64,000 nt of DNA, taken from contig NC_043004.1 in the NCBI RefSeq assembly GCF_006345805.1, forward strand, positions 74,710,001 to 74,774,000. The letters run 5' to 3'. The notes below the pieces were generated by a model. That model was not told the DNA's origin and searched no databases. It saw only the letters and a list, made by a program, of their open reading frames with translations. The stretch is from Octopus sinensis (lineage: Eukaryota). Of the stretch, positions 24,061-64,000 are shown in pieces (within the stretch, counting starts at the first letter, position 1; each line of letters opens with the position of its first letter). The position numbers and the translations under genes were made by a program.

Positions 24061-24118
<58 letters not shown>

Positions 24119-24460
24119 ATTTTGTTTCTTTTACTGTTTGTTTTGGGTTACATTACTTCCATTACGTCATCCATCATATTTTATATATATTTATTTCTCT
24201 GCATTGAACTCCTTCAAATGTACGAAACACATTAAGCACACAATATACGTTGCTGCTCCGGATTGTTAATTTATTTAATGAAAGGCGACACTTCACCCGG
24301 CTGATACTCCGAACATCACAGTTGGAAAATGCACAGATCTATGCGTTGCAAATTTTCCTGCGTGTCTCTTAATTTGACATCTTCAGATCAGCGAAGATCT
24401 GCTGCTGCTGCTGCTAATACTACTACTACTACTACTGCTACTGCTACTACAACTACTAGC

Positions 24461-24997
24461 GAAAGTGCTACATTGGAAACTGTGCGAAAAGCGGGGGCTA
24501 GAAATAGACAAGATGTGGTATGAGCACAAACCGCAGAGAGTGGCGGAGTCAGAGACTACAAATTCTCTGGGTGTTTCCCAATCCAAACAGATGATGTGCT
24601 ACAGCCTAACAGAACGGACCAAGTGGTGGTGGACAAGGGGCAACACATATGCTATATAGTTGGTGTTGCGTGCTCCTTTGACCCACTAATAGTTAAGAAG
24701 ATTAAGTACGAAATAGCCTGGCTATGGAAAATGAAGAAGGTGAAGATAGTGCCAATTATTGTTGGGTCCTTGGGAACTGTATCAGAAAGCATCAAGGAAA
24801 ATATGGAAATTGGAATAGAGTGCCTAGTAGAACTGTTACAAAAGGTTTGCCTCTTTGGCAAGGCCAGAATAAACAGGACAGGAATGGATGTCATAGTCCA
24901 GTAGGTTGCAGGCAGTAAGTCCGCAATGCATGCGAGACTCCAGGAGCACCAACAAAATCTGTGATAAAATGTAATGATAATAATGATAATAATGATC
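24461..24997 (+). mobile_element. R4/Dong-like non-LTR retrotransposon 3' fragment (restriction-like endonuclease)
   Basis: WYEHKP.RV.E, NRTD.VVVDK...CYIV.VAC.FD, LWKMKKVKIVPIIVGSLGTV; TAATGA/TAA-repeat tail at 24972-24997. Confidence 0.75.
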
Positions 24998-25004
24998 ATT
25001 TCTA

Positions 25005-25378
25005 CTGGAGGTACAATGCCTTAAATTTGGTGGGGGAGGGGAATAGTCGATTACATCGGTACTTAATTCATCGCCCCCGAAATGATGAAAGGCAAAGTCG
25101 ACCTCGGCGGAATTTGAACTCACAACATAAAGACAGGCAAAATACCTATTTCTTTATTACCCTCAAGGGGCTAAACATAGAAAGGACAAACAAGGATAGA
25201 CAAAGGTATTAAATCGATTACATCGACCCCAGTGCGTAACTGGTACTTATTTAATCGACCTCGAAAGGATGAATGGCAAAGTTGGTCTATGCAGAATTTG
25301 AGCTCAGAACGTACTGACGGACGAAATACCACTAAGCATTTTCTCCGGCATGCTAACGCCTCTGCCAGCTCGCAACTT
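25005..25378 (-). mobile_element. SINE family A dimer with two different 3' tails
   Basis: Head unit 25378-25147 with the TAATAAAGAAATAG tail joins GTATTT and a second body ending in the alternative ...AGTAGAAA tail. Confidence 0.75.
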
Positions 25379-25499
25379 GAAGAAGAAGAAGAAGAAGAAG
25401 AAGAAGAAGAAGATTCTCTAGTGACGTCACTTCATCCATACCCCCGTCGGCATTTCGACGAGGAACAGGAATAGTTTTTCTTTATCGAATGAATAAATA

Positions 25500-28310
25500 G
25501 AGAAATAAACAGATTGCGATTCAGAACTACCAACGATGTCCATGGAATCCAGACAAACTGGAAACATTAAATTCCGTTTAAGCAATTCCTTTTAACTTGA
25601 TTTGTTGCTCAGAGACTTTCCCGTTATTATATTATGCAATGTTAAACCTCCATTGATTTGGCAATATTTTTAGAAATATTATAGTTTGATATTAATGAAA
25701 AAATGCAATATTTTTTTATATTACGTAACTGAAGAAACGCTGTGTCTCCTTCAGATTCAATATTTATCAAACTGTCCGAAAGCATATTGGACCAGCTATT
25801 CGTGACTACCAGGATTGCTTTCGTTGAGAATGACGAGTTGAAACGCGTTCGATTTCCTGGCGAGAATCAACGATACCGATTCCATTGGAAATATCCGTCG
25901 GTAACAAGTAATACGGCATTTTTTAAATCTAGATTCTCCCATGCTGTACTGGGGAGGCTTCGAGAGATGCAAGACTTCTGAATTAGTGCTAAAGTAGACG
26001 AAATTCAGGTGGTGGGAGGGCGGTTCCAGACATGCGAGATCTGAGATGATACACACTGAAAACCGTCTACGGTCTACAGTTCTTGGGATCATCCCACTCT
26101 TTTTGTTTTTCCGGTTATGAAAACCAAACATTGCTCAAAGACAAGCAGCTGTTACTAGAGAGATAGAAACCTTGATAATGTACTCAACCGACCATCTTTA
26201 ATCAATGAGGCTAATGTAACTCGCTTTTCACGGGAGAAGTAAACCACAAGCCTGACTTCCCACCTACACTCCCTGAAGCCATGAAGATTATCTCGTTGAT
26301 ATCCAGCGCCAAAATCCCTAATGCTGACGTCATTCCTGATGGTGTATACAAAATAGTTGTGACGTTCGCCCATGCACCGCTGACTGACATCTTCCCCAAT
26401 GGAGCAAAGAGAAATTCTCCAGAACTTCAAACATTCCGACATTGCGCAAGAAAAGGGAAACACCAGCTATGCGACAACTCTCCTGTTCATCGCAGAGTAA
26501 AATCCCGGCCCGTTTCCTGCTCAAGTGTCAACTGAAACACGTACAACAAGATCTCTTTCCACAGAGTCAATGTGTCTTCCGTGCCGATCGTGGGACTGTA
26601 AACAAGATTCTTCGTAGTATATCAACGCCAACAAAAATTCTGACAACAACTCTGCGATCTCTACACGACATTTGTCGACTTGACAAAAGACTCTTGGCAA
26701 ATTCAGCGAGGACGTCTCGTGGAAGATCACAGAGAAGTTTCGCTTCCCCAGCAGATTTGTTACAATAGGCTGACATTTCCATAAGCATGATGGTCAGCAT
26801 ATTTGATGCCGAACAAATATGTGACACCTTCCCAGTAAAATAAAAGGTCCCCATCAAGATAGAATGCCATCGGGGTGCCGTGTGACACCCCGTTCATCTG
26901 CTTCAGGTACCATATTGATGGCAAGTTATGCAAGTTGTCCGACGCCCACTGTCTTCAGTGAGTCTGTTCTCGGGGTCTTCCTCTTCGCCGACAACCATTC
27001 TCTCAAAGCGGATAACGATTAGAAGATAGAGAAGGTGGTGGACCTGTTGTGAACAACCTGCGACAACTTTGACCTCATAATAAACATAAAGATGAAGGTC
27101 ATTCGCCTGGAAACCTATAGCATGGTTGTCAGATTTTGTAAAGGGACAAAAGAAAAAAATACATATTGTTGACAGATTCACGTGTCTCGGTTGCACACTG
27201 TTAAGAGCATTAAATATCGATTGAGAAGAGGTCGGCTGTTAGACCACAAAGTGGAGATATATCGTAGGGGTTTCGGCTGTGCGAGATGCGTGGGGTGTGC
27301 GGATCCCATCGGGGTGGCAACTTGATATGCGTGTGTTTGCTCTAGTCAATGTTATGTTCCATACAAGGAAAGAGAGGACTAAAACACGAATCGATCAAGT
27401 TTACGTATAAATATTCTTTTTATATGTTTGTTTCCTTCTACACAATATTAAAACAACGGCTAAAAATTTTCTGAAGCAGCACCCCAACTAGTTTTATCTA
27501 CGAGTCGCCACTGATTCTGAATAATCAGTAGATATGCAAAGCAACTCAATTATTTCCACACACGGTATTTTGGCGGCGTGTAGGTGCAATGGCCCAATGG
27601 TTAGGGCAGCGAACTCGCGGTCGTAAGATCGCAGTTTCGATTCCCAGACTGGGCGTTGTGAATGGTTTTTTAGTTTTTTGAGCAAAAGCACCTAAAGCTC
27701 TTCAAGGCTCCGAATGGGGGATGGTGGCGATCTCTGCTGTACTTTTTCACCACAACTTCCTCTCACTCTTTCTTCCTGTTTCTGTTGTACTTGTATTTCA
27801 AAGAGGCCAGCCTTGTCACACTCTGTGTCACGCTGAATATCCCCCAAGAACTATGTTATGGTAACACGTGTCTGTGGAGTGCTCAGCCACTTGCGCGTTA
27901 ATTTCGCGAGCAGGCTGTTCCGTTGATCGGATCAACTGGAATGCTCGTCGTCGTAACCAACGGAGTGCCACGTACCTTGGCAGCATCCTGCACTTCCGCC
28001 GGCAGGACAAGATCCCTAACATCTTCATGCTTCAGGAAACCAACATTCTAATCGTGTACTTTTGTTTGCTGATAGTCTGCATGCCAGACCACTGTATTCC
28101 AAAGCAACTTCTCCGTAACGAATTCTGTCTCGGGAACCACGATATTAACAAAGATTCGAGGGCGGCCTAAAATATCCCTTAAAAACTGCCAAAGTGTGAT
28201 TGACGTCTGGGAGATGCATGCCTCAAACCAACTTCACTGGCGGGACCTGATTCACATTGGTACCGAAGACACTGACATGAAAAGAACTACTACTGTTGCT
28301 GCTAAGAAAA
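25500..28310 (+). mobile_element. Highly degenerate RTE/BovB-like LINE interrupted by insertions
   Basis: SSAKIPNADVIP, KG...CDN, PQSQCVFRADRGT, YHIDGKL...LFADN, VDRFTCLG (to about 27240). Resumes near 27970 with QDKIPN...MPDHCIPKQLL...WE..ASN..WRDLI. Confidence 0.75.
27582..27968 (+). mobile_element. tRNA-derived SINE (family D)
   Basis: A-box-like TGGCCCAATGG and B-box-like GTTTCGATTCC, followed by a non-tRNA body. Confidence 0.7.
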
Positions 28311-28323
28311 AACCATACATTCC

Positions 28324-28354
<31 letters not shown>

Positions 28355-28529
28355 GGTGGTGGTGTTTTCGGTCGACTGCATTAAATTCAGTTTGAATAAC
28401 AAACGAAACAGGAAAATGTTTGTATTGGGACTGAAAATATTGTTGCTAAGAGACAATGACGTCATCGCTGATAACGAAAAGTCGAAGTAACTTTGACCTG
28501 CTCAGATTTCTCCGTTAGTGAGGTTATTC

Positions 28530-29680
28530 ATACAAGAGGCAGTCAAAAATTATCTGCACTTTCACCAAAGATTCACTAGATTGGTCGCACTGCTTCCAGC
28601 ACTCGCGTGCTTACTGGTGGCACTCCTGTGGTTACGATTGCTCCAGTTTTCCTTTTTGTGTTACAAAGAAAACACGGTCACACCGTGGGCATAAAAGGAC
28701 CGAGATCAGTGATACAATTTCTCTGCTCTGAAGGTATGTCAAGGGCTGAAATTCATCGCAGGCCTTCGGTGCAATTTGGGGACAGCACTCTACCGCCTAG
28801 GAGTGTGTATGGGTGAACCAAAGAGTTTCGAAATGGCCGGACAAGCATAAAGCACAAAGAAGGAGAAGGATGACCAACTTCCACCATTGACGTGAAGATT
28901 CGACGAGCTCGCGAGATGGTTCTGGCAAACTGACGAGTGACCATCAATGAGATGGCATGTTCTCTGCAAATTAGTCATGGTTCTACAAAGGAAATCAGCC
29001 GCCACAAACTTCGCTTCTGTAAAGCGATGGGTGCGAAGAGCGCTCACCGAAGCGCATGAGCGCAATCGTGTGGAAATCTGTCAATGCTTACTCAACCGCA
29101 ACAAGGGTGAAGGCAAAACTTAGTTTTTGGAGAGAACAGTCACAGGTGATGAAGCATGGGTTTATCACTTTGAGCCAGAATCCAAAATGTAGAATATGGA
29201 ATGGAAACACGGAGTCGCCAGCGAAAAAGAAATTCAAGACTTGACCTTCTGCAGGAAAAGCAATGGCAAACGTGTTTTTTTGTGGGGAAGGGAGGCAAAC
29301 GGGCCTCTACAGGAACATTACCTGGAAAAGGGGTTTACAGTCACCAGTGTAGGTTACAGTGAAATATTGGCCAACAAACTGAAACCAGCAATTTGCACCA
29401 AATGCTGGGCCCTATTGTCAACAATGCACGTGCACTTATGGCCGTCCACACTGTTGAAACAATTAAGAAGTTGGGTTTTGAGTTGCTGAGTCCAGATCTC
29501 CCCACTTTCGACTATCACCTCTTTGGACCTTTACAAGGTCGTCGGTTTGCTACGGACAAAGACGTGCACGAAGTGCTGCATAAATTGCTGCATGTGATGG
29601 AATAAGCAAGGCTGAAGACCTCTGGAAGAACTGCTTCGAAAAGCAAGGTAACTGCAACGAGACTGCATTACATGTCCTGG
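28530..29680 (+). mobile_element. Degenerate mariner transposon
   Basis: RSVIQFLCSEGMSRAEIHRR, TGDEAWVYHFEPES, SPDLPTFDYHLFGPL; multiple frameshifts. Confidence 0.88.
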
Positions 29681-30613
29681 GTGACTACTGAGTTACAGAT
29701 ACCTTCAGCAAGCCCTGCTAACATCTGTATTACGAATCATTAAATATGCTACATAACAAATGGATCCGCAAACAAATTATACTCCAAAATAATGTCAGAT
29801 AGAACTTATTCAAATTTTTACCAGACTAATAACTGTTTTCTTGATATTATCCATGCATTTATCAACGATGATTTATTCCAGGTGACATCACAATAAACTA
29901 CACTCTAGTCTGCAATTGTTGCAGAATGGTTTACTGCATACACACACACACATTCGCTTCTGAACTCCAATTGCCTTCAACCAAATTCACTCTGTTGGAA
30001 ACTCTTGGGACCACAAACCTGGTTTGAGAACAACAAAGATTTTTCTTGACCTGTTTCTCAACCAGGAGGGATGGAAAGGTAAAGCTGACCTGGACGAGAT
30101 TTGAACTCAGAATGTAGAGAGATGGAAACAATGTTGCTAAGCATTTTGACGAAAATGCCAACGATTCTGTCAGCTTTAATCCTTACTTACTTGCTTGTAC
30201 TTGTGATGGTGTTTGCCTGGGGCAGGCTGAGGTTGCTCTGACCAACAAGTTCATACCTCCCTCATGAAGGATGACCACATCCAACAGTCAGCTGCAGTTG
30301 AGGTTCTAATGGATACCCACTTCTAGTTCCAGTGCCAGAAATCATAGAGACAAAGCCCATAAAATTTAGTGTTGAAGTTATGATCTAAGGTGTAAGAGAT
30401 CAAAGGAATATCTATCTTAAAAATTAATACTGGGGTCAATGTGTTCAGCTAAACTCCTCAAGGTGGTGCCCCAGCATGACCACAGTCCAATGACTGAAAC
30501 AAGTGTAACATAATAGATATCTTGATTTTAATTTCCTATTATCGCTTTACTGTGGAGGAAGGGGTTATGCCTTGTGACCTTTGCAAACCCTTTTAGACAG
30601 AGGAACAAAATAT

Positions 30614-30831
30614 TCTTTTCTACTTTAGGCACAAGGCCTGAAATTTTCAGGGGAGGGGGCCATTCGATTAGATCGACCCCAGTACACAACTGGTACTTAA
30701 TTCATCAACCCTAAAAGGATGAAAGGCAAAGTTGACCTCAGCGGAATTTGATCTCAGAATGTAAAGACAGACAAAGTAACGCTAAGCATTTCGCCCAGCA
30801 TGCTAACGATTCTACCAACTCGCAACCTTAG
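30614..30831 (-). mobile_element. SINE family A (alternative tail)
   Basis: 15-bp TSD AGAGGAACAA(A/C)ATAT at 30599-30613 and 30832-30846. Confidence 0.85.
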
Positions 30832-30904
30832 AGAGGAACAACATATCAACAATCCTATTAAACAGTTGAAATATGCAGACGAACATACGTTTTTGTTAAA
30901 CTTG

Positions 30905-30950
30905 TTTATTTCTATTATATGTTAATTTTTTTTATATAAAACCTTTTATT
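30905..30950 (-). terminator. Candidate poly(A) signals of MRPS9
   Basis: Minus-strand AATAAA at 30945-30950 and 30905-30910, downstream of the stop codon. Confidence 0.5.
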
Positions 30951-31026
30951 TTACAGCTACATTCACTCTGAAACCAATAAAACATGGATGTGTTACAATA
31001 TTGATCTGAAGACTTTCATTTCATCT

Positions 31027-31039
31027 TCAACGCTTTTTC
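31027..31039 (-). CDS. MRPS9: MRPS9 exon 14
   Basis: TTTTTTAG|G AAA AAG CGT TGA = (W)KKR*. Confidence 0.9.
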
Positions 31040-34000
31040 CTAAAAAACAAAGAAAAAAGATACAGTAAACAATAAGAATAAAACTCTACACATTCAAAGA
31101 ACAATGAAGTCAATATATTCTTTTCTACTCTAGGCACAAAGACTGAAATTTTGGGGGCAGAGAGGGACCATTCGATTAGATTGACCCCAGTATGCAACTG
31201 GTTCTTAATTTATTGACTCCAAAAGGATGAAAGTGAAAGTCAACCTCAGCAGAATTTGAACTCAGAACGTAAAGACAGACAAAATATCACTAAGCATTTT
31301 GCCAGACATGCTAACAATTCGGCCAACTTGCCACCTTAATGAAGTCAATATATTGCGGCTATGAAGGTGGTGAGCTAACAGAATTGTTACAGCACCAGGA
31401 AAAATGTTTGGCAGCATTTCTGCCTACTTTATGTTGTGAATTCAAATGGTGCTGGGGCCAACTGTGCCTTCCATCTTTTCAGGGTCAATAAAATAAGGAC
31501 CAGTTGAGCACTGCGGTCAATGTAATTGTCTTAACCCCTCCCTCGAATTTACTGACCTTGTACTAAAATCTGAACCCAGGATATCACATCATCATCACCG
31601 TTTAACATCCACTTTCCATGCTGGCATGGGTTGGATGGTTTGACTGAGGATTGGCAAGCCAGGAGGTTGTACCAGGCTCCAATCAGATCTGGCAAAGTTT
31701 CTACAGCTGGATACCCTTCCTAATGCCAACCATTCCAAGAGTGTAGTGAGTGCTTTTTAGTTCCACTGGCACACGAGCCAATCAGGTGGCATTGGCATCA
31801 GCCATGCTCAAATGTTGCTTTTTACGTGCCACCGTAAAAACTCTATCAGTATCAATTGAAGTTTCTGTTTTCTTTTTAATTTCTTTCTCCTGAGCCTATC
31901 CAGACCTCATGATGTATAAGTGACCAAGATCACAACATTGACCACTGAATGGGACACCTGTCTGTTGCAGTGTTCAAGGCCAGCAATTCTGAAGGGAGGG
32001 GACAATTACATCATCCCTGTTCTTGACAGGTCCTTTCTCTTTATCACCCCAGAAAGAGATGAAAGACAAAGCTGACCTCAACAGGATTTGAACTCAGAAT
32101 GTAGAGAGCCAAAAGACATGCCATTAAGTACTTTGCCCAACATGCAAATGATTCTGCTACCTTAACTGACCCTTTTACTCATGTCTTACAACAAGCAGGA
32201 AGGAACATGGGGGACCTATCTAAAACCAACAGATACATTACTTACCAAGTACTCTTCTTCCTAGCTTTTGGTTGACCAGGCTTTTTACGTTCTTTGCGGC
32301 GCAAATCTCTCATCAAAAGTCCAGCTGCAATATAGAAACAGGAAATTACTTTTCTTCTTCTGGTTTTTTCTTTCAGCAACACGGCTAACTAAAGCATTCT
32401 TCAATAAGCTACACTTGTCTGTTTAACCCTTTCATTACTGTATTTATTTTGAAATGCTCTGGGTTTCTTTCAATTACTTTAAATATAACAAAGAATTTAG
32501 TAAAACAATTTCATTGTCATTAAGCTAGTGTTAGGAACATAAATTGTGACTAAGATTTTAATTGTGGAAGATTTTAATTCAAAACTTATGAAAATGAAAC
32601 ATTTGTACTCAGAGCCAGTTTCAGCTGGGTTGGTAGCGAAAGGGTTTAAAAAATGGTTTAAATTACGCTACAGTACACAGACTTATCCCTTATTCTAGTA
32701 GGCAGACATTCAACTAATGTCTTAATAATATTTAATTATAAAAATAGGATTTTTTTAAATATTGAATGACTATGAAGGTCCAGTAGGGTAAAAGAGGAAA
32801 CAGGGTTCCAGAGGAGAAAAATGGTTGAGGAACACAGGTTTGTATGGTTCGACAAGATCCAACTAACCCGAGGGCCATGTGGGTCTCCAATATCTCCCTC
32901 AGCAAGGTTTCTATGGTTGGTTGCTCTTCCTAACACGAACCACTTTACCAGAGTGTACTGGGTGCTTTTTTCATAGCACCAGCACTGGTAGGGTCGCTAA
33001 GTAACATGCAAGTAAACCCCCTTCACAGATTGGGAATGCAGTATTGAGGGTGGGTGGCATCGTACAAGTGTAGAGATGCTTAAGTAGGAAAGAGGAACAG
33101 GAATAGATGTCTTGTTGCAAAGGAGATACATGGGAGCAGACGAGTTTTATTAACTTTATCAGATACACTGAGATGAGAATACTTGAGAGGCAGACACTTT
33201 GATTTTCATTTTCCTGAAATGAAGAAACATAATTTGCTGTTAATGTGACATAATTTGCTGTTAATGACCTTAGTCTGTGGGTGTCTTTCAGGGACACAAG
33301 TTTTTACCATACCAAAATTCTTCATTTTCTGTAGACATGCAAAAGATGTTTGGAATAAAATTCACTTGCTAGAAATAGCCAAATTTTCCCACAAATCACA
33401 CAATACTACAACTTTAAAAGGCACATGGCACAGTGGCACAATGGTTAGAGCGTTGGGCTCACAATTATGGGGTAGTGAACATTTTTTACATTATTTACAT
33501 TTGACGGATATTTGTCCTCATCTTGTTTGTTGTTAACACAAAGTTTCAGCTGATATACCCTTAACCCTTCATCAGGTGTCTTGGGGAAATTTCAAACCTG
33601 GGTTCTCATTCCTAAGGTATTTTTCGATGTTGTTGCTATTATTATTATTATTATTATTCAGGTCACTGCCTGGAATTGAACTCAGAATCTTGGGGTTAGT
33701 AGCCCGTGTTCTTAACCACAACGCCATATGCCCGTGTGTTCAATTCCTGGCTTGTGCTGTTTGTTGTCTTCTTGAGCAAGTCAATTTATTTCATGTTGCT
33801 CCAGTTCATTCAGCTGTAGAAATGAGTTGCAACATCACTGGTGCCAAGCTGTATCGGCCTTTACCTTTCCCTTTGATGACATCGGTGGTATGGAGTCGAG
33901 AGGCTGGTATGCAGGGGTGATTGCTGGTTTTCCATAAACAACTTTGCCTGGATTTGTGCCTTGGAAGGTAACTTTCCAGGTGCAATCCCACAGTCATTCA

Positions 34001-37000
34001 TGACCGAAGGGGGTCATTTACAATTTTAAAAGGAGGACATATTTGATAATGTCGATGATGATGATGATCTTAGATATATTATGCCTGAAAACAAAGATGG
34101 GTAATCATGGCTAGAATGCTTATCCACAGGATCAAAACTGACCTAGGGTTACACAATAACAGCTAGATGAATATAGCAGTGCTCCAGCATGGCCAAGTCA
34201 AATGACTGAGACAAGTAAAAGAATAAAAGAACAGCTGAATTTAAAAGAATATTGGAAACGAAAATCCCTTACCTAATCGCATCTTCTCAACTGTTGCACT
34301 GTCCATAAAAGAAGCCAAGGCCTTTGACAACGCAAATCAAATGGACCCAGCCTGACTGGTGTGGCCACCACCTTCGACAGTAGCTTCCACATCAACTTCT
34401 CCAATTTTCTTCACAAACTGAAGTGGATACAGCAATTGGGCTCTAAATAAATAAAAATAGTTTTTATAGTCAGATACACTGCCAGATCAGACTGGGCCTG
34501 GTGCAGCCTCCTGGCTTCCAGACCCCAGTCGAACCGTCCAACCCATGCTAGCATGGAAAGCAGACGTTAAACGATAATGATGATGATGATAATGATAAGA
34601 GGGTGGATGAAATCCAACAGGGTGTGAATAAAACATCGACTTTAGTGAAGCATTATAAGCAAAGTGATTACAAATAAAAAGTGGAAGAATGGGATGATTG
34701 GGTGCAGCTGTTTGGACACTGGTGATGTGGTACAGCCAACTGGACACTGAGCCTGTTCTGAAGATAGTAGTTTCCGTCTACCAAATCCACTCACAAGGCA
34801 TTGGTCAGCCCGGGGCTATAGCAGAAGACACTTGCCCAAGATGCCACGCAGTGGGATTGAACCCGGAACCATGTGGTTGGTTAGCAAGCTACTTTATTTT
34901 AATAATTTGCCACTAGGGCAGCACACAGAGTAGCTGCGGGCTGGACAAGGACATTAATGGATGATGGTGGTGGTTGATGAAGATGGTGATGGGAGAAGTC
35001 AGAAAGCGCCCGCCGACTTTGCTTCTCTAAAACAATGTTCTTCTTTTTTCAATAATTTACAAAATTTCAAAAATTACAAAAATTCAAAAAATTTTCACAA
35101 AAATTTCAATTTACAATTTACACTTTTAAAAGTCTCTTCAGAGGCAATAAACCTCTGTCACAATGTAACACAATTACAATTTACGTTACCCGACCGATGA
35201 ACTCTCTTGCTTTAATGACGCAATCGTCCATCGTCAGGCTTCCGCATACAGGTATGACTTGCAAGAGATCCTCCGGGAAAGAATTCTCGATCCTGCACAT
35301 ATCATTTTCGAGTAGGACCTCCGCAGCCAGCTGCGAAGGCCACTCGGGATACTCCATGCAGGACCGAAGTCCTTCCCATTGGTTTCTCTTCCTCATCTTA
35401 CCTATTTCGTTTTCTACAGTGCCTCCTTTATGGAAGAGGACTACATAAAATTTCTCCGGCATCACAACCGCCGGAGGACACATGGGAGACGCCGTCTGGG
35501 TGTTACAGTCCGCTGGTGGCGTCCCGTTCCTCTTTTTCTTTTTCTTTTTACGCTGGGCCTCGGGAGGTTGAGGTTCCGGTGCTATACGCACCGGGTCCTC
35601 TTTTTCTTCCGCAGCCTCCGGTTCCTTTGGTGGGTCGCCATTGCTCCCCACTTTTCTTTTTCTTCTTTTGGAGGAGGATTTTTCCCCCTCCTCACTTTGT
35701 TTCTCTCCCTCCATTGGTGGGGCAGGGAGAGGCTCTGATATTAACTTCTCCAGGATCCTACTCTGGTTCCTGGGGCAGTTTTTCTTAATGTGGCCGGTCT
35801 CCGAACACAGGTGACACAGGCGTCCCACAAGCATCACCGGATACTTGGACCCGGCCATCTTCAAGAAGTCCGGCAAAACCAGACTCTTGGCCGACTGGGT
35901 CCACAGAGTCAAAGTAGCCTTTGCCCCTTCCCAGTCAGCCGCAGGCTGCATTCTCACGTTCAAGATCTTGGCGCTACCACCACTCAGACCCCGGCGGATG
36001 GAATCTTCCACCCACTCAGGCTCAAAGCCGGGCGGCAGGCCGCAGACCCATAATCGTATCAATTTTTCCCCCTTATAGCTTGGGAGAAACAGAATCTCTT
36101 CGCCCTCAATGGGCTTACTCGCGAAATCGCAAGCTGCTTTAGGGGAGTCAAACAGCAACCAAATCGTTGCGTATTTGGCTCCCCGTTGAATATGTTTAAC
36201 GGCTGGCATATAGTCTGCCAGCTCGTTCATAATGGTGGCTTTCGGGAAAACCATTATGGTATCGAGCGACCTCGAATATGTCCTCAACACCACGGTTCTG
36301 TCCTCGAGCTCCTTTAAGTACTTTTTGGGAGGTGTCAATTCCCACACAGTGAAATTCCTTGTCATAACGTAAGAAAAACAGTTCAAAATGTTACAAAATA
36401 AATTAGACACAGAAAGGAGAATGAAAAAAGCAACAGAAGGGAAGAAATAAAATTAAAATGGCAGTTCAAAAAAAGTTCTTTTTTTTTACAAATGAATGAT
36501 AGACGGAGAAAGAGAGTTCAAATTCAGACAAAGGAATTAATTTTTCTTTTTTTTTTTGTTCACTTTTTCGGCCAAATACACTGTTGGTAAAACACCTTGG
36601 TAAAATAATCCTTGGTAAATCCCGTGGATAACACAACGACAATTTCAAAAATAATTTTTGCAGACGGACTACGCCGCCTCAAAAACACAATTTTCTTTAC
36701 ACTCGACAACAGGCAGAAAATTTATATCCGGAGCAAAGTGGAGCCTTATTATCTGCTAAAAAAATATTTAATGCTAAAAAACATTAATGCAAGTGATAAA
36801 ACTTCACTTCGCTCGCAAAAATACAAAATGCCTACCTGCAGTCGAGTCGAAAGTTCAACAATTCACGTTGAAACAACGTGGCATCTGGAGCAGCAAAATA
36901 ACACGTCCGAACAGTTCAGAGGTTAGCAAAGCTACTTACCACACAGCCACTCCTGCGCCTATATATATATATATATATATATTTTATATAATATTCTTTA

Positions 37001-37227
37001 TGTTTTTTTCTTTTATCACCTATTAGACTTACTTCCCTTATATTTAACGGATTTTTATAGCTTCTGTTGCCATTAATAGCTGACAAGAATGTACCATAGC
37101 TCTTCACTCCAGCATTCGAAACTCTGAGTACTATAATGACAACCTTTTACTGTTTATTCTAAATTATACCATATATAAACAACCCTCTATTTCTCTAATA
37201 TCTACGTCTCATTCTTTTGTTGTTACA

Positions 37228-37268
<41 letters not shown>

Positions 37269-40200
37269 CTATATGCATGCACACACACATATATGTATGC
37301 ATGTGTACTCTTGTTGAGACATGACATGATGATCGTAAATGAGTGTCACTGTCACACAAGCAGTGTTGTTCACTTCCAATATTCTGCAAAGAAAGGGTTC
37401 GGCCATGGGGAAACATTATCTTTCTTAGAAACCGATGAGGGTTGGCAACAGGGAGGGAGGGGGGTCTGGCTGTAGAAGATCTGCAAGGCTGGATTAGAAT
37501 GGAGAAAGGAACAATTTGAGACAAGGAAAAAAACTATTCTTACCTTGATGATTTCGATCTAAAGTAAAGTAAGTCTTGACCATTGATTGTAAACTTCCCA
37601 CTGCCTTGAATCCACAGTGTAAGAGAAGTCAGACAGGATTTTCTTTTTCCTGGGAAGAAAATAAAATGACCTTACAAAAATGTGAACTCGGAATATATTT
37701 TAACAAAATCATACTCTTTATTGTCATCATCATCATCATCATCATCCTCACCATTATAGTAACATTTGTTTTACCAAGGTGACATGGTTTGGGCTAGGTC
37801 ATCAATACAACCATTCTGTTCATGTGTGTGTTTTGTCACGGCCATTCTGGTGCTACCTAATCGGTACTGCTGAGATGACACTGATTTATTTGGTGTCAGA
37901 CTTTTCAATGTTTCTGTCCTTCTCTCTCTCTCTCTGTTTGTGTATGCGCATTTACTTCGTTTATCATCATCATCATCATTTAATGTCTATTTTCCATGCT
38001 GACAAGCCTGAGGGTTGCACCAGGCACGCTTTCTACGTCTGGATGCCCTTCCTAATGCCAACAACTTTACACAGTGTACAGGGTGCCTTTTATGTGGCGC
38101 CAGCACCCACAGGGTCACCAAGTAGTCTGCAAGAGGAGGACCTCTCAGCTCAGTGAAGGAGAGGAAGTGAGAGAAGTGGCCATGTATCATGCAAGAGGTT
38201 GGTGCATGACAGAGGGACAGGAATAGCTGTCTTACTACAGAGAAAATGCTCGGCAGTCTCTATCTGTTTGTGTATATTTCCAGGCACCAAAAATTACTGT
38301 CACCCAAACATGTTGAATGTCCAGTCAACTGTGCCAAATCTTCAGCACCAAAACAGCCATGCCAAATCATCTCATTCGGTCTCTCTCTTTATATTCTCTT
38401 GTGTCATCTTGTCCATGACAGCCAATGTTCTCAGATCTGAGCATACTACTATTTCTCAGTAGCATATTCATCATCATCATCACCATCATCGTTTAACATC
38501 TGTTTTCCATGCTGGCATGGGTTGGACGGTTTGACTGGGGTCTGGCAAGCCAAGAAGCCACACCAGGCTCCAATCTGATCTGGCAATGTTTCTACAGTGT
38601 AGGGGGTGCTTTTTACGTGCCACTGACACAGGAGCCAGACGAGGCGAGGGGGCTGGCACCGACCATGTTCAGATTGTGCTCTTTACATGCCACCAGCACA
38701 GGAGCCAGTCAGACAGCGCTGGCACTGTCCATGTTCAGATGGTGCTTTTTACGTGTCACTGGCACAGGAGCCAGTTGTGGCAAGTGGGGCTGGTACCGAC
38801 CACGTTCAGATGGTACTTTTGATGTGCCACCAACAGAGCCAGTCAGGTGGCATTGGCAATTACCGAAGCATGAATGGTGCTTATTGCATGCCACCAGCAT
38901 GGGAGCCAGTCAGGCAGCACTGGCATCAGCCACAATTACAATTTCCATTTGATTGTGGTTTGATTTGATTTTGATGTATTGTTCCTACCAGCAATTAATA
39001 CTTATGTACCAGTTGCCAGGAATGTGTTTAATATGTAAAAATTGGTCCATTCAATTAGTGTCACACTGCTAAACTTAGTGGCTATCTTAAGCAATGTGTT
39101 CAGGAATGGTTAATGGATTAGAAGTGAGACTGAAGAAAGAGCAACAACTCCTGAAATATGCATATACTCCCAGTACCTATTCTTCTATCTTCAATCACAT
39201 TGTTTACACAGATGTATTCATATAGATAAAAAAAACATCATAACTTTCAGTGTTGGCTCTAATTTCTACAGAAAATCTGGAGAATATAAATTTAAATGAG
39301 TACTGTTTCTGTTTCCTTCACCCTGCCTCCCTAACATCCCAACATCTGTTCTCTCCATCATTAATTCATCACCCATTTTTATGCATTTTTTGATGGAGTA
39401 TTTATGTATCATTTACCCGGTATTTATATATCATTGTTTACATTACAACTTGTCTCTACCCAAATATTCCTTGCATTAGCCAAAACTTTAAATATCTAAC
39501 CACTTCATCAACTCATCTCTGCTCAGCCTTTCTTAGGACATCTGACACACTTAAAGGACCATAAGAAAATTCCTTAAGAGTTTGTAACGTTTAAAGCGAA
39601 TTCTTTCTTTATTGGCCACAAGGGCTGTGATAACATTTAAGACAATACTAAGACAAAGAACAATGAGGATTTACATGGAAAAATGCAAACAATAAAGCAA
39701 CAATAATTTGCAAAAACATCTTAACAAGCAAAATCCCCAATAGGGAGGAATATGTCACCCAGGGGTAACCAAGGAACCTCACAGATCCCAACCCACCCAA
39801 CTCAGGAAGAGTACGATGGCAAAAGCTCTCCTCTCCTCCATATTCCTCAGCCAATTGGCACTAGCTTAGAGTCAGCTCACTTACTCAAATCCTGCTAACC
39901 AAATTCACCCACCTTCCAACAAATTTACAGGGTAACAACAGCACATTCCTCTCAAACCACACTTTTTTTTTCATTGAAATGAAATTCTAAAAAGTTGATG
40001 AGGCTGAAGAGGAAAATGTCTGTCTTCAGTCTTTTTAGTTTCATCCGCTCAATAACCACTTTTGCCATTAACCACAAAAGACATACTTCCCAACCAAAGG
40101 AAGTTGATGGAGTTGGCCAATAGATGGATTTCTCCACCACCATAACTCCACAAGTTAGCAATTCTCAAATGCTGTACAAGCACATGCAGGGCAGTTTCAT

Positions 40201-43200
40201 CGCTCTGTGCACATCAAGGGCAAATATGGCTGTCAGCACTACAATGCCTGTAGAGCCTATACCGAACTGGCAATGCCCTCAGGAGCACTTTCAGGCCAAG
40301 AATTTCTGGATATTATTCATGGACATCTGACCCAAAAGTCCTTCAGAAAAGAGCAACCAGTTGATCTTCATCAACATCCAGAGTTTCTCCTTGTCACTCT
40401 TGCCCACCACTGATCCTCTACAGAACACCATGGTGGACCATTTACCAACTGCATAGCCTGACTGACAGAGGAATGTGAACGCTTGATGGCACCCAAACTG
40501 CAGCTCAATCGAAGTCTTAGGCTGAGGAAAAGCATGTTGAACAAACACTAACCAGCCCTACTCACTAACAAGGAAACACTGGAGATGCTGTAGCTTCAGT
40601 GTATGTCTGCCCGTTATTAGCCACATGTTCAGTCCTTCATCTATCAGATGCCGACAGCAAGTGGACCATCTGACTAGTAGGACACGTTCCCTCCACAAAA
40701 TGTAAAAGAGCAAATGCTCCTATTTGGTCAGCCATGAAGAAGGGGCACAGCAAGATGGTCAAGTGAGAATAGATGACTAATGCAATGTAAGCATTCGCCA
40801 GCTCTGCCTGGCCCTTCAGGGATAGTTTCTTCTCAGCCCATTTGTGGATGAGACTGGCCACTCTGCACATTACTGTTTCTTGTCCACTTGGAGGGCTAGA
40901 TCAAACCAAACCCAAAGCAGCTTGACCTGTCCATCTGCCCAGTGCAACAACACCATTGAACATTATGGAACTGCATCTCCAGTGCCAAATTGTAGGATCA
41001 ACTCTTGCTTAATTTTTGTACCTGTCACTACTTTGTATTTCCTCAGAGTACTGCCAATGACCTCAATGCCACCTTCAGGACAGCCACCAAGTACTGATGG
41101 TCAACCCTACCAAAAGCTTTTGACTGATCCAAATTGATCAAGGCCCCATCTTTGCCAGGTTCTTTACCACTCCTTCCTTTCTATGATGTGTCTCATGAGG
41201 TGGAGGCCAACATCGATACATCTGTTTAGTATGGCCATAATGTAATTAAACAGTATAATAAAAAAAAAAAACACAAATAAAATACACATCTACATGTGGG
41301 TGAAGAGTCACTCCCTGTTTTTGCTGAAGGTCCTCCACAACTCTAACTGCCTTCCATTTCTATATACACCTCATCCAGGCACTGATGACTGTCAGCCTCA
41401 AAAAGGGCTCATGAGTGAGTGAGTGATCTTCATCATCATCCTTTTAACATTTTCCCCATGCTTGCATGGATCAGATGGAGCTTACTGAGGTAGACTTTCT
41501 AAGGTAGGATGGCCTTCCTGTCACCAACTTTCGCTTTCACAGGAGACTAAAAATGTAGGACACTGCTTGTATGATAGTGACGATCATGTACAATTATCAC
41601 ATGAAGTCAGGACAAGAACACACACACACACACATACAAGCTTCCATACAGTTTCCATCCACTCAAAAAGTTTTAGTCGACCTGGGGCTATAGTAGAAGA
41701 CATTTGCCCAAGCCAAGGTGTCACCCAGTGGAAGTTGAACCCATAACCATGAAGTTGGAAAGGAAGCTTCTTAACCACACAGCCACACCTCTATCTATTA
41801 TGATAAATCAGTGGAAATTATTTCAAATACAGACCAGAACTTAAGTAGAAAAAACAAAATCATTGTTGGACCTTACCTACAGTTTTTACATACTGGCGAC
41901 CATCTTCATCAATAAGAGGCTGAAATAAGAACAAACATATATATTTCTGAGGAGGACCAAAACAAATATTTTCCATCACTGCAAAAGCTTAATTTATTTA
42001 CCTTGAGTTAAGTCATACTGACAATTTCTAAAAGGAATGAAATGGTGCTATACATGTTTACCTATGACCAGTAAGTTTAAGACTTTCCTAATAAGTAAGC
42101 AAAAAGAAAATTACATATGTATGTTCTATGCATCTTCTTCCTTATTCTTCAATACTTATTCTTTAATCTAATGAAGAAACGATTATCTCCCTTGTACTAA
42201 TTATCCACGAGGAGAATCCTCATGTTTGGTTTAATCAACAACTGGTGAAACAAACGACTGCATTTTAATGGCAGATAAAATTAATTTTAATCCTATTTAA
42301 ACATATTTTTCTTTCAATCACTGTCATATTTTAAAACAGTTCAAAAATGGTAAGAATTGATTTGCCGTAAAGAATATAAAAATTTAAATATTTTGAATAG
42401 TAACCGTCTTTACAGAAGTTTTGCATAAAATTAATTTTAATGATAACATTGAACACATTGTAATTAAAAAAAAAACGAAGGAGAAAACTTTTCAAATATA
42501 AATAAAGTGGAAGCATACAAAAATAAACATTATTCTCCATCTTTCTGTGAATTTTGTTTCATTTTGAAAAATAAAAAAATTATTTTATGGTTTATTATTG
42601 TTTACATTTTGAACCATTTATGTATACTTGAGGGCACCAAAACCTTTTAAGTGCTTAGGGCCTCTATGGGACTTAATCTGGCTCTGTTTTTACCTATCAA
42701 AGGAGCTACAAGCACTTCACATGATGGAACTTCCATCTACCAAATCCGCTCACAAGGTTTTGGTCAGCTGAGGCAATAGTAGAAGACACTTGCCCGAGGT
42801 GCCATGTGTGGGATTGAACTGGGAACCATGCGATTGGGAGGCAAGCTTCTTACATAGATCATAAGTGTAATGTTTAAATGGAACATACAGTTTCAATTTG
42901 AATTTGTGAAAGCTGGTTTTCATATTTCTTTCTGTATTTTAAAATGAATTCCTCTTCTGTGGCGCTAAATTGCTGAGACACCAGACGTTCCATTAGATTA
43001 ATGAAGTTGTTATGCTGCAATGACAAGAATAAGACTCAAGACAATTCCTCTACAAAACAAAAATAACAGGAAGAACAATGAACCTTGTGTGTGTGTGAGT
43101 GTGTGTGTATGTACGTATATATATAAAGAAAATGAGATGACAAAGGAATAAATAATGAAATAATTATCTAATGAACTTCATTAGCTTACAGTTGTTTCTG

Positions 43201-44034
43201 CTCTAAGATGCAATGGACTCATAGTTGGGGTCCTGAGTAACACCTTATAACTTCATCAGAGCTACATATATATATATATGTATATATATGTCCATTTTTT
43301 TTTCCATCCTTGTTTTTGTATATATTCGCTGTTTCTTCCAAGGAATCTAATGCTCTTAGCTTAGTTTTTCCTTGGGGCTGGCCAAATTGGAGCAATCTCA
43401 AGTATAATCAGCCAAAATTGCAAAGATAATCTGGTACTTGACTGAGGAAAGAAAACTTTGAATGACCTGTCAGAAAGCTTTAGCAGAAGACTGTTGCCCA
43501 CAGTGGCACTGAGCCTGAAGCCATGGGGCTGGGAAGCTAACTTCTTAACCACACAGCTACACCTGCACCCACACACACATGTATGGAACATAGACATGAA
43601 ATGATGATGACAAACAAAGACTTAGAAACTTACATGCATACATATGTATGTGTGTGTTTATAAATGTATGATGAATTCCAGCATTACATAATCACACTTT
43701 GAAGTAATACTTTGGTGAACTTATCACATCATCATCATCATCATCTACGTTTTTCTTATTTAAGTAGAAAATATTAAAAAATTTCAAATAGGCCAGGTTT
43801 CACTGATCAAAACACCTTTGATTTAGAACTCAAAACTCAAGCTAGAGCAACCATTTATTCAACCAATGAACTGAAAAGGTGGGCATTAGATAGGCGTAGG
43901 AATGGCTGTGTGGTAAATAGCTTGCTTACCAACCACATGGTTCTGAGTTCAGTCCCACTGCATGGCACCTTGGGCAAGTGTCTTCTACTAAAGCCTCAAG
44001 CCGACCAAAGCCTTGTGAGTGGATTTGGTAGACG

Positions 44035-44073
<39 letters not shown>

Positions 44074-47000
44074 TGTGTGTATATGTTTGTGTGTCTGTGT
44101 TTGTCACCCCAACATCGCATGACAACTGATGCTGGTGTGTTTACGTACCCGTAACTTAGCGGTTTGGCAAAAGAGATCGATAGAATAAGTACTAGGCTTA
44201 CAAAGAATAAGTCCTGCAGTCGATTTGCTCAACTAAAGGTGGTGTTCCAGCAAGCTCACAGTCAAATGATTGAAACAAGTTAAAGAGAGATTAGATGATC
44301 CCTCATTTTTGAACATAAAATGCAGAATATGAAATGTGTGTATCTTTACATTGACACTGCACGAAGGACCCTTTTCTGTTCACCAGATTTAGCACCTGTG
44401 GACTTCTGTCTCTTCCTCCAAGATGAAAATGCAGCTCAAAAATTGTTGTTTTAACATCGCTGTTGAGATGCAAAACGAATCACAGAAAGTCCTCAACTCG
44501 CTAACAGAAAACGACTTCCAGGTCACATTTTCAAAGTGGCTGGATCCCTGGGACTTGGGTATTGCTGAGCTAGGGGACTATTTCAAAAGAGACGATGTTA
44601 AAAATTGGGGAGATAAGTTATTTGTTATCAAACATAACTAGTCCTGGAATTTTTTGATACTATCTCATGTTCAAGTCCCCCATAAACAAAAATGTGCTGC
44701 TGTGCGGTAAGTAGCTTGCTTACCAACCACATGGTTCTGTGTTCAGTCCCAATGCATGGCACCTTGGTAAGTGTCTTCTACTATAGCCTCGGGCCAACCA
44801 AAGCATTGTGAGTGGATCTGGTAGACGGAAACTGAAAGAAGCCCGTCGTATATATATATATATATATGTATATTTGAACAAATCACAAGAAGTTTTTTTC
44901 TGTGACGTACGTATGACCATGTCAACACTCCTGCTTGGCGTTGTTTATCGTCCCCCAAATTATCATCAGGACACACAGCTTTGCAATATCCTCCGAGCTG
45001 CTGCCAGGAAAACAGCCAGTTATGTTTTTATTGCAGGCGATTTCAATCATCCTGAGATCAATTGGGAAACCTTCCATTGGCCACAGAGTGCAAACGATTT
45101 TGTTGAGCTTGTACTGGACTCAAACTGGTCACAAGTAGTCACCTCTCCAACAACAGGCGACAACACCTTGGACCTGCTCTTCACCACAACTCCTGAAGCG
45201 GTTATCAATTGCACTACGGAGGAACCTCTAGGTGACTCTGATCATGCTATGATCATCGCCAATCTGGCTCTTGTGGGCAACAAAAACCTGAACCATCTCC
45301 AATCTGCTTCCTTCGATTGGAAGAGAGCAGATTGGAACCTGTACCACACTGAACTACAGCACCCAAACTGGCGTGAATTCTACAACTCTGGAGATGTGAA
45401 TACTATACTCCAGAGTATCCTGGACTCAATATGGGCAGCATGTGCAGCATCAGTGCCACGTAAACAGAAAAAGAAGAACCGCCCCAAAAGGGCAATTTGG
45501 AAAACTTCAGCGGTCCGACTTGCCAGGAAGGAACGTCGGACTGAACGGGAATACAAGTTGCATAAATCAGACACCAACAGGAAGAAGCGGAATAAATCTT
45601 CCAACCATCTCAAGCAAGTGACAAAAAAAGCAGTGCTTGAATTTGAACAGTGCATAGCAGTCAATCCTGACAGCAAGGTTTTCTGGAAATATGTGCATTC
45701 AAAGAAGAGACATCACTCTCCAGTGGGCCCTCTTCGCAACCCTCACACAAACCAGATCACTGACGACCCCAAGGAATGCGCAGAACTCATTGCCGAGTGC
45801 TATGCAAACATATTCACTGTTGAAAGTCAAATGTACCATCTTCACCATCACTAACAGCAAATTCCATAACAACTATGGAATTTACACCTGCAATGCTGCG
45901 ACGTCACCTTCAAAATAAGCGCAACTATGCCTCCCCTGGTCTCGATGGAGTTACATACCTGCTTCTCAAACGTGGCAGGTACTTCCTTTTACACCAGCTT
46001 TCTATTTTCTTCCAGTACTGTCTCAACAATGGTGCTACTCCGGAGCAGTGGAAAACTGCCAGTGTCATTCCTCTGTTCAAAAAGGGCGACCGCACATCAG
46101 CTGTCAACTATCGCCCAGTCAGTCTCACTAGCTGTATTGCAAAACTGATGGAATCGTGTGTCAGAGAAACACTCTGGAACTTCTGGAGCTCTCACAGTCT
46201 CATCCGACCCTCACAATATGGATTTGTCCCTAACTCCAGCTGCAGTGATCAGCTTGTCGAGTTCCTTGAGGACATTACTCAGATCACTGACAGTGGCTCA
46301 TGGGTGGATGTTGTCTACCTTGACTTTGCTAAGGCTTTCAACTCTGTGCCACACAAAAGGCTTATGGTGAAACTCTCTGCAATGGGTGTGAGGGATGACC
46401 TTTTTAACTGGTTGAAATCCTTCATTCTCAGCCGAAAGGAGATAGTCACAGTTCTAGGACAGCATTCTACACCATATGATATGTCATCGGGTGTACCACA
46501 GGGATCTGTCCTTGGTCCCCTCTTGTTTGTGGCATACATTAATGACATAGATGCCAATTTAAAGAATGCCACAGTATTGAAATATGCAGACAACATCAAG
46601 CTGTACCTTGAAATCAAGAGGACAGATCCTGATGTCTACAACTCTTTCCTGCAATCAGACCTAGACACAATGCAGCAATGGATCACAGACTGGCAACTAA
46701 AACTGGCTGTGGACAAGTGAACCACTATGCATTTTGGGAGAAAAAACCCTGCGTCCACATACTCCCTCCACAACACTGATATCAAGAAATCCTCTTGCAA
46801 GCGTGACCTAGGCATCACTGTCAGCAGTGATTTGCGTTGGACAAAGCATATCTCTAAAATTGTCAAGAAGGCCAAGGGTGTCTTGGCATCACTCAGCAAG
46901 ACTTTTGTTAGCCGCTCTCCAGTCATCTATTTAAAACTGTATACAGCTATGGTACGACCACACTTGGAATTCGCATCATCAGTTTGGAACCCCTATCTTG

Positions 47001-49004: not shown

Positions 49005-49065
<61 letters not shown>

Positions 49066-50008
49066 TATATACAACAGGCTTCTTCCATCTACCAAATCCA
49101 CTCACAAGGCTTTGGTTGGTCTGAGGCTATAGAAGACACTTGCATAAGGTGCCACACAATGAGATTGAACCCAGAACCATGTGGTTGGTAAGCAAGCTTC
49201 TTACCACACAGCCACTCCTGTGCCTATAATCATCCTTATTTAGCATCCACTGTTCCATGCTTCCATGAGTCAGGCTGAATTTATTGAAGCAAATTTTCCA
49301 GTTGGATGCCCTTTCTTTAATCAACCCTAACCCATTTCCCAGTAAAGTAATATTTCCCCATGGCTGAACATATTTTCAAGAAAGACTAGCAATAAACAAC
49401 CCCACTAGTAAGACAGTGATGCTCATTTACAACCAACAGGCATGATGTCAAGACACAGAAACACACACACACACACAAATACTGTAATAAAAACTGGTGA
49501 ATGGATTATCTGGTATTACTACAATTGCTTCATTAGGAGTTTTAATGAAACGATTATAGTAACACTATATAATCCATTTGTCTGTTTTTATTATGCTTTT
49601 ATAGCACACTTAAGGTTCCATTCCTAGTTGGATGCTTTCATATCCAACTGGAATTGCAGAATACCCAACAACAGTGACCTTCCTTCCTCAATGCCTTCCA
49701 TAATGTATTACTTAACAGGGATTCTGAGCATCCTTCACTTTGATATGCCTTAATTCTTAGTGGGTTTCTTGTAATCAAATCTATATGTATGGGGTGGTGG
49801 TGAAAAGTTCCTGGCTTTAAGGGTATCATGAAAGGCCTGGTTGGAGGCGCAACCTTCCGAGTTTTTTTTACAGGGCTTAGAAAAACTGAAGGACTGCTGC
49901 CAATAAGTTGTAGATCTGAGAGGGGAACATGTTGAATAAAATCATAATTAACTGTTCTGCCTGTATTTTCTTTTACCCAAAACAGGAAACTTTTCAACAC
50001 CCACTCAC

Positions 50009-50066
<58 letters not shown>

Positions 50067-50693
50067 GGCGCATGGCTCAGTGGTTAGAGCGTCAAGCTTA
50101 CGATCGTGAGGTTGTGAGCTCGAATCCCGGACCGGGCTGCGTGTTGTGTTCTTGAGCAAGGCACTTTATTTCACGTTGCTCCAGTTCACTCAGCTGTAGA
50201 AATGAGTTGCGACGTCACTGGTGCCAAGCTGTATCGACCTTTGTCTTTCCCTTGGATAACACTGGTGGCGTGGAGAGGGGAGGCCGGTATGCATGGGCGA
50301 CTGCTGGTCTTCCATAAACAACCTTGCCCGGACTTGTGTCTAGGAGGGTAACTTTCTAGGTGCAATCCCATGGTCATTCATGACCGAAGGGGGTCTTTAT
50401 ATATATATATCAACAATTGAGGGTAAAATTAATTAGTTATTAATCAATTTCACCAAGTATTCAGTATGTAAAAGGACCATTTAAGGCGAATTCAAAATAT
50501 TACATTATATAATTAGGGCTTAGTAAAATAAATTACTTTGCCACATACTGAACTTGCTAGAAATAGCAGCCAAAAAAAGATTTTTTGCCATTTCCACTAC
50601 TTAAGTAGTGGAAATGGCAAAAAAACTTTTTTTGGCTGCTATTTCTAGCAAGTTCAGTATGTGGCAAAGTAATTTATTTTACTAAGCCCTAAT

Positions 50694-50724
<31 letters not shown>

Positions 50725-52660: not shown

Positions 52661-52691
<31 letters not shown>

Positions 52692-62295: not shown

Positions 62296-62364
<69 letters not shown>

Positions 62365-63882: not shown

Positions 63883-64000
63883 AGTACTTATGGATCTTGC
63901 TAAAATTTTTCCAACGACTTGAAGTAATTCAAATCTCACCAAATTATTTTCAAACAAATGTAGTTTTTGAATGCTAGTGACGAAAATCAGGTACTTATTT

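Follow-up and report, generated by a model that had tools for sequence, protein, structure and literature searches.

A premature TGA codon in a duplicated MRPS9 gene of Octopus sinensis

Mitoribosomal proteins are normally encoded by single-copy genes, and a second, maintained gene for uS9m is unusual. uS9m, the product of MRPS9, carries the Ribosomal_S9 domain (PF00380) and is known from mammalian mitoribosomes (e.g., 3J9M and 3JD5). Here we describe an MRPS9-like gene, hereafter copy A, on the minus strand of a 64,000-nucleotide (nt) stretch of the Octopus sinensis genome, hereafter the window (C8:74,710,001-74,774,000; C8 has 107,269,306 bp, and the assembly searched has 2,719,151,902 bp in 13,516 scaffolds). 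The reading frame of copy A is interrupted by an in-frame TGA, and two related copies, B and C, lie elsewhere on C8. The TGA is very probably a genuine germline C>T change in a redundant, derived MRPS9 paralogue that has recently been losing its function, with copy C serving the mitoribosome.

The locus resembles several described systems, each in part. It is related to uS9m in that conceptual read-through of copy A gives a protein of 397 aa, and that residues 81-403 of copy C align to a mammalian chain with E = 3e-94, an alignment that contains both the QAG(A/S)IR motif and the ...KKPGQ..ARKK.TWKKR tail. Copy A, in contrast, ends inside the S9 domain, at profile position 70 of 121, so that a C-terminal tail is missing from its product. 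With unprocessed pseudogenes, and with segregating null alleles of redundant paralogues, it shares the form of an intron-bearing segmental copy whose intact parent is elsewhere; its first disabling hit is a CGA>TGA transition at a CpG, and the sister copy B has an independent null. It differs from them in that each copy has one lesion, that the coding sequence (CDS) still bears the mark of earlier purifying selection (about 0.1-0.2), so that inactivation would be very recent or unfixed, and that RefSeq models copy A as protein-coding (345 aa) and not as a pseudogene. Restorative adenosine-to-inosine (A-to-I) recoding in coleoids (PMC6881472) is similar in that a coleoid gene is damaged by substitution at a conserved site, but it needs a G>A change that editing reverts, whereas copy A has a C>T change from which editing produces Trp only. 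Finally, copies A and B resemble the false duplications left by uncollapsed haplotypes in long-read assemblies, being collinear over >100 kb and patchy in divergence, with kb-scale identical runs and a mean roughly equal to the heterozygosity of the sister species, in an assembly with a 10-fold excess of duplicated BUSCOs over that species. However, gene conversion after a recent, tandem-like segmental duplication would produce a pattern similar to that of A/B.

The premature stop codon of copy A

The exons of copy A were determined by exact threading of the RefSeq product and the downstream tail onto the window DNA. The gene, assigned to RefSeq XP_029640307.1 by cluster look-up, spans 31027..63128 from start to normal stop, and its 14 exons run on the minus strand from 63128 to 31027, with GT...AG at all introns. 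Its CDS of 1194 nt comprises 397 codons plus the stop. Direct reading of the minus strand in exon 12 (34273..34442) gives CAG GCT GGG TCC ATT TGA TTT GCG (QAGSI*FA), where the TGA at 34339-34337 is codon 346 and lies 64 nt from the exon-12 donor. The RefSeq model has 345 aa and ends ...QAGSI at this TGA, while the conserved C-terminal tail of MRPS9 is still coded 3' of it.

Codon 346 is CGA in all four octopus comparators, namely copies B and C, O. vulgaris and O. bimaculoides, and therefore the feature at 34337..34339 is a C>T transition at a CpG. Among the three O. sinensis copies, TGA at codon 346 occurs in copy A only. According to the alignment, Arg occupies the position in O. vulgaris, O. 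bimaculoides, Argonauta hians and Gigantopelta aegis, and the mammalian uS9m chain from solved mitoribosomes reads QAGAIR, hence Arg there as well. In terms of the conserved motif GQAG(A/S)IR, the final residue is thus TGA in copy A and Arg in copies B and C and in the octopus, Argonauta, Gigantopelta and mammalian sequences.

These results bear out most of what the initial annotation had reported on the basis of the window, i.e., a QAGSI*F stop at 34337-34339 in MRPS9, 14 exons with intact splice sites and a coded downstream tail, a stop at codon 346 of 397 located 64 nt before an exon junction, and a CGA to TGA CpG transition at a conserved Arg. The last point now extends over octopus, gastropod and mammalian comparators, and the comparison with other species that the annotation had suggested gave CGA at codon 346 in both O. 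vulgaris and O. bimaculoides. It had also called the gene otherwise perfect, which holds for frame and splicing but not for the private replacements R60Q and A120T, the four N-terminal replacements shared with copy B and a retroelement in intron 11.

The product ending at the TGA matches positions 1-70 of the 121 positions of PF00380 (50.7 bits) and does not contain a full-length S9 domain; the corresponding match of copy C covers positions 1-121 (117.6 bits). Copy A is nevertheless related to animal MRPS9 over the whole length of its coding sequence and has the same exon structure, and the best database matches are molluscan MRPS9. From general knowledge of uS9 and of nonsense-mediated decay (NMD), the 345-aa product, which would be without S9 profile positions 71-121 and the basic C-terminal tail, is predicted to have lost its function, and the mRNA of copy A would be an NMD target, with two exon junctions downstream of the stop. 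The initial annotation had likewise predicted NMD and loss of the C-tail, and both predictions are reasonable.

Copy number, ancestry and constraint

When the genome was searched at the DNA level with exon 12 and at the protein level with O. vulgaris MRPS9, three intron-containing MRPS9 loci were found on C8. The initial annotation had recommended looking for a second MRPS9 locus while treating the window copy as the MRPS9 of the animal; the search yielded two further intron-containing copies on C8, and the framing proved wrong, because an intact ancestral copy lies at C8:601006-630950 and the sister copy is interrupted by another stop. The sister, copy B (about C8:74.274-74.345 Mb, same strand as A), has CGA at codon 346 and carries the nonsense change R68* (CGA>TGA, C8:74,334,502-74,334,500), and therefore RefSeq starts its product in exon 3. 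Copy C (C8:601,006-630,950, strand opposite to A) was threaded exactly as 14 GT-AG exons encoding an intact protein of 403 aa. The RefSeq proteins of copy A (XP_029640307.1, 345 aa), copy C (XP_029640125.2, 403 aa) and copy B (XP_029640055.1, 322 aa) fall in one 90% cluster, which holds five annotated proteins in all. The five octopus sequences (copies A, B and C, O. vulgaris and O. bimaculoides) agree in the length and phase of each of the 14 exons.

PARG lies directly upstream of MRPS9 in both O. vulgaris and O. bimaculoides, and copy C also adjoins PARG. The 50.7-kb MRPS9 locus of O. vulgaris aligns end to end with the copy C region at 96.4%, PARG flank included, whereas its match to copies A and B is restricted to the gene-bearing segment (about 92.5%). 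The flanks of the O. bimaculoides gene, on both sides, match copy C only. Because of this PARG synteny and the flank matches in the two species, copy C is the ancestral MRPS9 locus.

The segment that copy A shares with the ancestral locus, about 42 kb in length, lies at C8:74,734,079-74,775,627, extending beyond the end of the window, and contains the whole MRPS9 gene without PARG. The part inside the window (24079..64000) aligns with C8:593823-640536 in inverted orientation at 89-95% identity. Window positions 1-24078 are outside the duplicon shared with copy C and inside a larger block common to A and B. A tree and distances were calculated from all exons and about 400 bp of flanking intron, concatenated into 8467 ungapped columns. 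The tree was ((A,B)100,(C,O. vulgaris)100,O. bimaculoides), and the distances were 1.7% for A-B, 1.4% for C-O. vulgaris, 4.5-5.1% between A or B and C or O. vulgaris, and 7.9-8.5% to O. bimaculoides. Published ages are 34 million years (My) for the split from O. bimaculoides and 2.5 My for that between sinensis and vulgaris (PMC10700109). On this rough clock, the duplication giving rise to A/B would date to near 18 My ago, well before the separation of O. sinensis and O. vulgaris.

All five octopus CDSs have 1194 nt, no indels and intact splice sites throughout. Private to copy A are R60Q (CGA>CAA), A120T and R346* (CGA>TGA), and private to copy B are K197R, I243T and R68* (CGA>TGA). On the stem shared by A and B, parsimony assigns 4 replacement and 10 silent changes (P = 6e-5 against neutrality), all four replacements falling within codons 1-36. 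Besides the two stops, the tips of A and B together have 4 replacement and 7 silent changes (P = 0.002-0.015, varying with the assumed neutral fraction), a ratio indistinguishable from that of the C/O. vulgaris lineage (5:6). The A/B paralogue was thus under selection, and presumably functional, through most of its history. Since purifying selection acted until recently, as the 4:10 stem and the low tip ratio indicate, the stops of A and B are recent.

We also considered whether the clean exons of copy A derive from gene conversion by copy C. This was rejected, as the A-C silent-site divergence of 0.096 is not below the intron value of 0.048.

Judged as duplicated pseudogenes, the copies retain their introns and have an intact parent elsewhere (copy C), and the reading frame of each is disabled by a mutation, R346* in A and R68* in B. 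Relaxed constraint, on the other hand, is not apparent, as indels are absent, splice sites are intact and the counts are 4:7 at the tips and 4:10 on the stem, which indicates that the inactivation of A/B is very recent. The paralogue would thus be either recently inactivated or represented by null alleles that are still segregating.

The most probable course of events is as follows. The ancestral locus (now C8:0.60 Mb) would have given rise to a copied segment of ~42 kb with the whole MRPS9, without PARG, before the O. sinensis/O. vulgaris split, roughly 18 My ago on the 34-My O. bimaculoides calibration, and retained under purifying selection over most of that time. Recent loss-of-function hits would then have struck copy A (R346*) and, independently, copy B (R68*), after which the product of copy A would end at residue 345 and intact copy C would supply the mitoribosome. 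If so, selection maintained a second uS9m gene in the common-octopus lineage over perhaps 15 My, and this gene would now be in the course of loss through CpG-driven nonsense changes. As a caution, the stop in copy A provides no evidence for recoding, rescue by editing or loss of an essential gene.

The A/B pair and alternative explanations

Copies A and B were compared over C8:74,690,001-74,794,000 (A) and 74,221,271-74,366,499 (B), a block that is open at both ends. They are collinear and in the same orientation for >104 kb and are 0.43-0.47 Mb apart; the offset drops from 469 to 427 kb through insertions, including one of 36 kb in intron 3 of copy B. A search with the last 3 kb of the A region found that the shared block goes on at 99% identity. 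The substitution divergence between A and B averages 1.30%, varies between 0 and 4.4% among windows of 4 kb (dispersion index 23) and includes one 3.3-kb run free of substitutions. The dispersion index of the older pairs A-C and B-C is 2.3-2.5, i.e., nearly uniform, and the interspecific pair C-O. vulgaris is as patchy as A-B. The heterozygosity of O. vulgaris is 1.22%, and duplicated BUSCOs amount to 5.2% in the O. sinensis assembly versus 0.5% in that of O. vulgaris, the latter collapsed with purge_dups (PMC10700109). Thus A and B show what is expected of uncollapsed haplotypes, long collinear blocks with patchy divergence roughly equal to the heterozygosity of the sister species. Because of this collinearity, the patchy divergence near 1.22% and the excess of duplicated BUSCOs, we lean to the view that a single paralogous locus is represented by both of its haplotypes, A and B, which scaffolding would have set in tandem. 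The somewhat less favored alternative is a segmental duplication of recent date, modified by gene conversion. If A and B are haplotypes, the sequenced animal has two different null alleles of a spare gene. The A/B region is a concrete candidate for a haplotype duplication in the O. sinensis reference, which would make gene counts too high and give the appearance of paralogues. The conclusion on the TGA of copy A is the same for two haplotypes and for two loci.

An alternative explanation of the TGA is a consensus or polishing error, the true base being C (CGA) and copy A being intact. The assembly is an older long-read, Hi-C-scaffolded one with 20,491 contigs and excess duplication (PMC10700109), and near-identical copies are able to confuse polishing. 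Nevertheless, we consider an error very unlikely. A transition at CpG is the commonest real mutation, and CpG transitions account for 4 of the 7 changes on the A branch, with codon contexts as read by us. The sister copy B has an independent CGA>TGA at another codon. Moreover, the ancestral CDS has only four CGA codons, and only 3 of the 205 nonsense changes possible in the CDS are CpG transitions; R346* and R68* both belong to that class, and it is very unlikely that random errors would hit two of these three. This CpG-transition spectrum indicates real germline mutation and not consensus error. UGA can be decoded by near-cognate tRNAs, with low-level insertion of Arg, Trp or Cys, and the leaky context is UGA followed by C. 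Bypass of the stop by such readthrough, or by A-to-I conversion of UGA to UGG, would allow a full-length protein to be made, and the presence of one UGA each in A and B, which are otherwise free of defects and have a low replacement/silent ratio, is compatible with it, as is the heavy mRNA editing of coleoids (PMC6881472). This we regard as slightly more improbable than an error. Restorative ('harm-permitting') A-to-I editing acts on G>A substitutions only (Jiang and Zhang 2019, PMC6881472), whereas the change in copy A is C>T, and editing would give Trp in place of an Arg common to all uS9m sequences of the comparison. The fold predicted for exon 12 and its flanks is no better than that of shuffled sequences (z = -0.45). 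Of the marks of an A-to-I recoding site, neither restoration of the ancestral residue nor double-stranded RNA around the site is thus predicted. The base after UGA is U in copy A and G in copy B, neither giving the leaky UGA-C. The intact copies have the same sequence as copy A on either side of the codon, which means that nothing has evolved to promote bypass. Bypass is also unnecessary, since the intact copy C exists. A similarly slim chance is given to the broader view that A/B is still a working gene and that its in-frame UGAs, both derived from CGA (Arg) in sequences with the look of otherwise maintained genes, are read through insertion of Arg by a near-cognate tRNA, through stimulated readthrough or through editing; if true, the octopus tolerates or uses mitoribosomal protein genes interrupted by UGA.

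It is hardly credible that the window copy is the single essential MRPS9 of the animal, captured in the assembly as a heterozygous null allele. In principle, a diploid assembly can contain a null allele, and if A and B are haplotypes the TGA at this site is indeed heterozygous. However, a full-length intact copy with conserved synteny is present at C8:601006-630950, and the putative other haplotype, B, stops at codon 68, which leaves the locus without an intact allele in this animal. The least credible reading of all is that UGA encodes selenocysteine (Sec). It has the identity of the codon in its favor, but all relatives have the ancestral Arg at this position and none has Cys or Sec, and no match to a selenocysteine insertion sequence (SECIS) or to any other Rfam family was found at the gathering score in the 64-kb window. 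A selenoprotein gene would have both a SECIS and a Cys or Sec at the homologous position, and neither was found for copy A. The initial annotation had offered four options, i.e., a consensus error, a heterozygous null allele captured in the assembly, a recently dead duplicate, and rescue by readthrough or editing. The recently dead duplicate, possibly combined with a captured null allele, agrees with the present results, and the others are unsupported: error is made unlikely by the CpG spectrum and the independent stop in copy B, and editing rescue by a C>T change that editing cannot reverse and by an ordinary local fold. Its remark that editing to UGG would yield Trp and not Arg is right, given the ancestral CGA.

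Several observations weigh against a recently inactivated paralogue with copy C as the working gene. With their low replacement/silent ratio, the tips of A and B give no direct sign of relaxed constraint, and the word pseudogene stands on one stop per copy together with redundancy. The base call at each stop is that of the assembly sequence of one individual. The tree predicts an A/B-type paralogue in O. vulgaris unless it was lost or is unannotated, and none is annotated there. Copy C is at 0.6 Mb in O. sinensis, but on the homologous chromosome of O. vulgaris the orthologue is found at 77.8 Mb, and the block may be misplaced in one of the two assemblies. Finally, no octopus protein fragments covering exons 11-14 were found in a collection of 5.8 billion proteins, where the matches were to insect, bacterial and other distant S9 proteins.

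Exons, insertions and repeats around the MRPS9 copies

The remaining exons of copy A were located on the minus strand by the same threading. Exon 1 (63045..63128) begins with the ATG at 63128-63126, which equals the annotated start of O. bimaculoides. Exon 2 (60006..60138) contains, according to the CDS comparison, the private R60Q (60045-60043) and codon 68 (60021-60019), which is CGA here and TGA in copy B. Exon 3 (57517..57620) is followed by exon 4 (55727..55789), where the same comparison places the private A120T (55753-55751), and by exons 5 (54507..54537), 6 (52960..53039), 7 (51051..51136), 8 (48108..48183), 9 (42889..43014) and 10 (41877..41919). The Ribosomal_S9 domain begins, according to the Pfam match, in exon 11 (37544..37649). 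In exon 12, codon 315 (34432-34430) is the ancestral CTG (Leu) in copies A and B and in O. bimaculoides, and ATG in copy C and O. vulgaris. Exon 13 (32246..32324), being 3' of the premature stop, is untranslated, and exon 14 (31027..31039) ends with the normal stop at 31029-31027.

Loss of the start codon in copy A was considered and rejected, since its ATG is the same as in O. bimaculoides and the MTSPTT extension of copy C and O. vulgaris is due to a 2-nt insertion. Upstream of the start (window 63129-63150), an ATG lies 16 nt away and out of frame in A, B and O. bimaculoides, forming a short overlapping upstream open reading frame. The 2-nt insertion of copy C and O. vulgaris brings this upstream ATG in frame and produces the MTSPTT N-terminal extension. 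Upstream of about -75, A and B are like O. bimaculoides, and copy C and O. vulgaris differ from them.

Intron 11 of copy A contains a ~2-kb retroelement insertion (34895..36959, minus strand) with a ~15-bp target-site duplication; the insertion is absent from copy B. It has a 423-aa open reading frame (ORF; 36452-35184) with a weak, below-cut-off match to a CCHC zinc knuckle. At least 40 scored copies, from 1428 first-look candidates, occur elsewhere in the genome at 80-98% identity, and because of these numerous copies the family is taken to have been recently active. Copy B in turn has a ~36-kb insertion in intron 3 (C8:74295517-74331825), which in copy A is 1.7 kb, and a ~7-kb insertion between exons 1 and 2 (C8:74337184-74344368).

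In the search for a host gene to anchor the A/B site in O. vulgaris, none was found in window 1-31000, which contains only transposon fragments and microsatellites. This part is filled with mariner-like and reverse-transcriptase fragments and with long short-repeat arrays (14175-15385, 16454-18211, 21389-21981 and elsewhere). The arrays give highly repetitive ORF translations, e.g., ...HTYIHTYI... over >1 kb, and strong swings of GC skew are seen across them.

The PARG-MRPS9 block with copy C is at the very start of the O. sinensis scaffold and at OX597821.1:77.76-77.81 Mb in O. vulgaris, 65% along the chromosome, which in relative position is near A/B (69%). The two genomes are reported to be largely collinear (PMC10700109), and the discrepancy in position reflects either a rearrangement or a difference in scaffolding. 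A 4.5-kb insertion (C8:596097-600602) lies about 400 bp upstream of the copy C ATG and is not present in the orthologous O. vulgaris locus. Its 204-bp terminal direct repeats are 99% identical, it is flanked by a 5-bp duplicated target, and it has gag/integrase-like ORFs on the opposite strand. These features mark it as a young long terminal repeat (LTR) retrotransposon, promoter-proximal to the sole intact MRPS9.

Two further stretches resemble uS9m. An exon-9-like fragment with stops and 86% identity lies on another chromosome (C4:159952949-159953095). On the unplaced scaffold C8223, an intronless uS9m-like stretch with stops (41392-41872) has 35-54% identity over residues 258-400 and may be an old retrocopy or foreign DNA.

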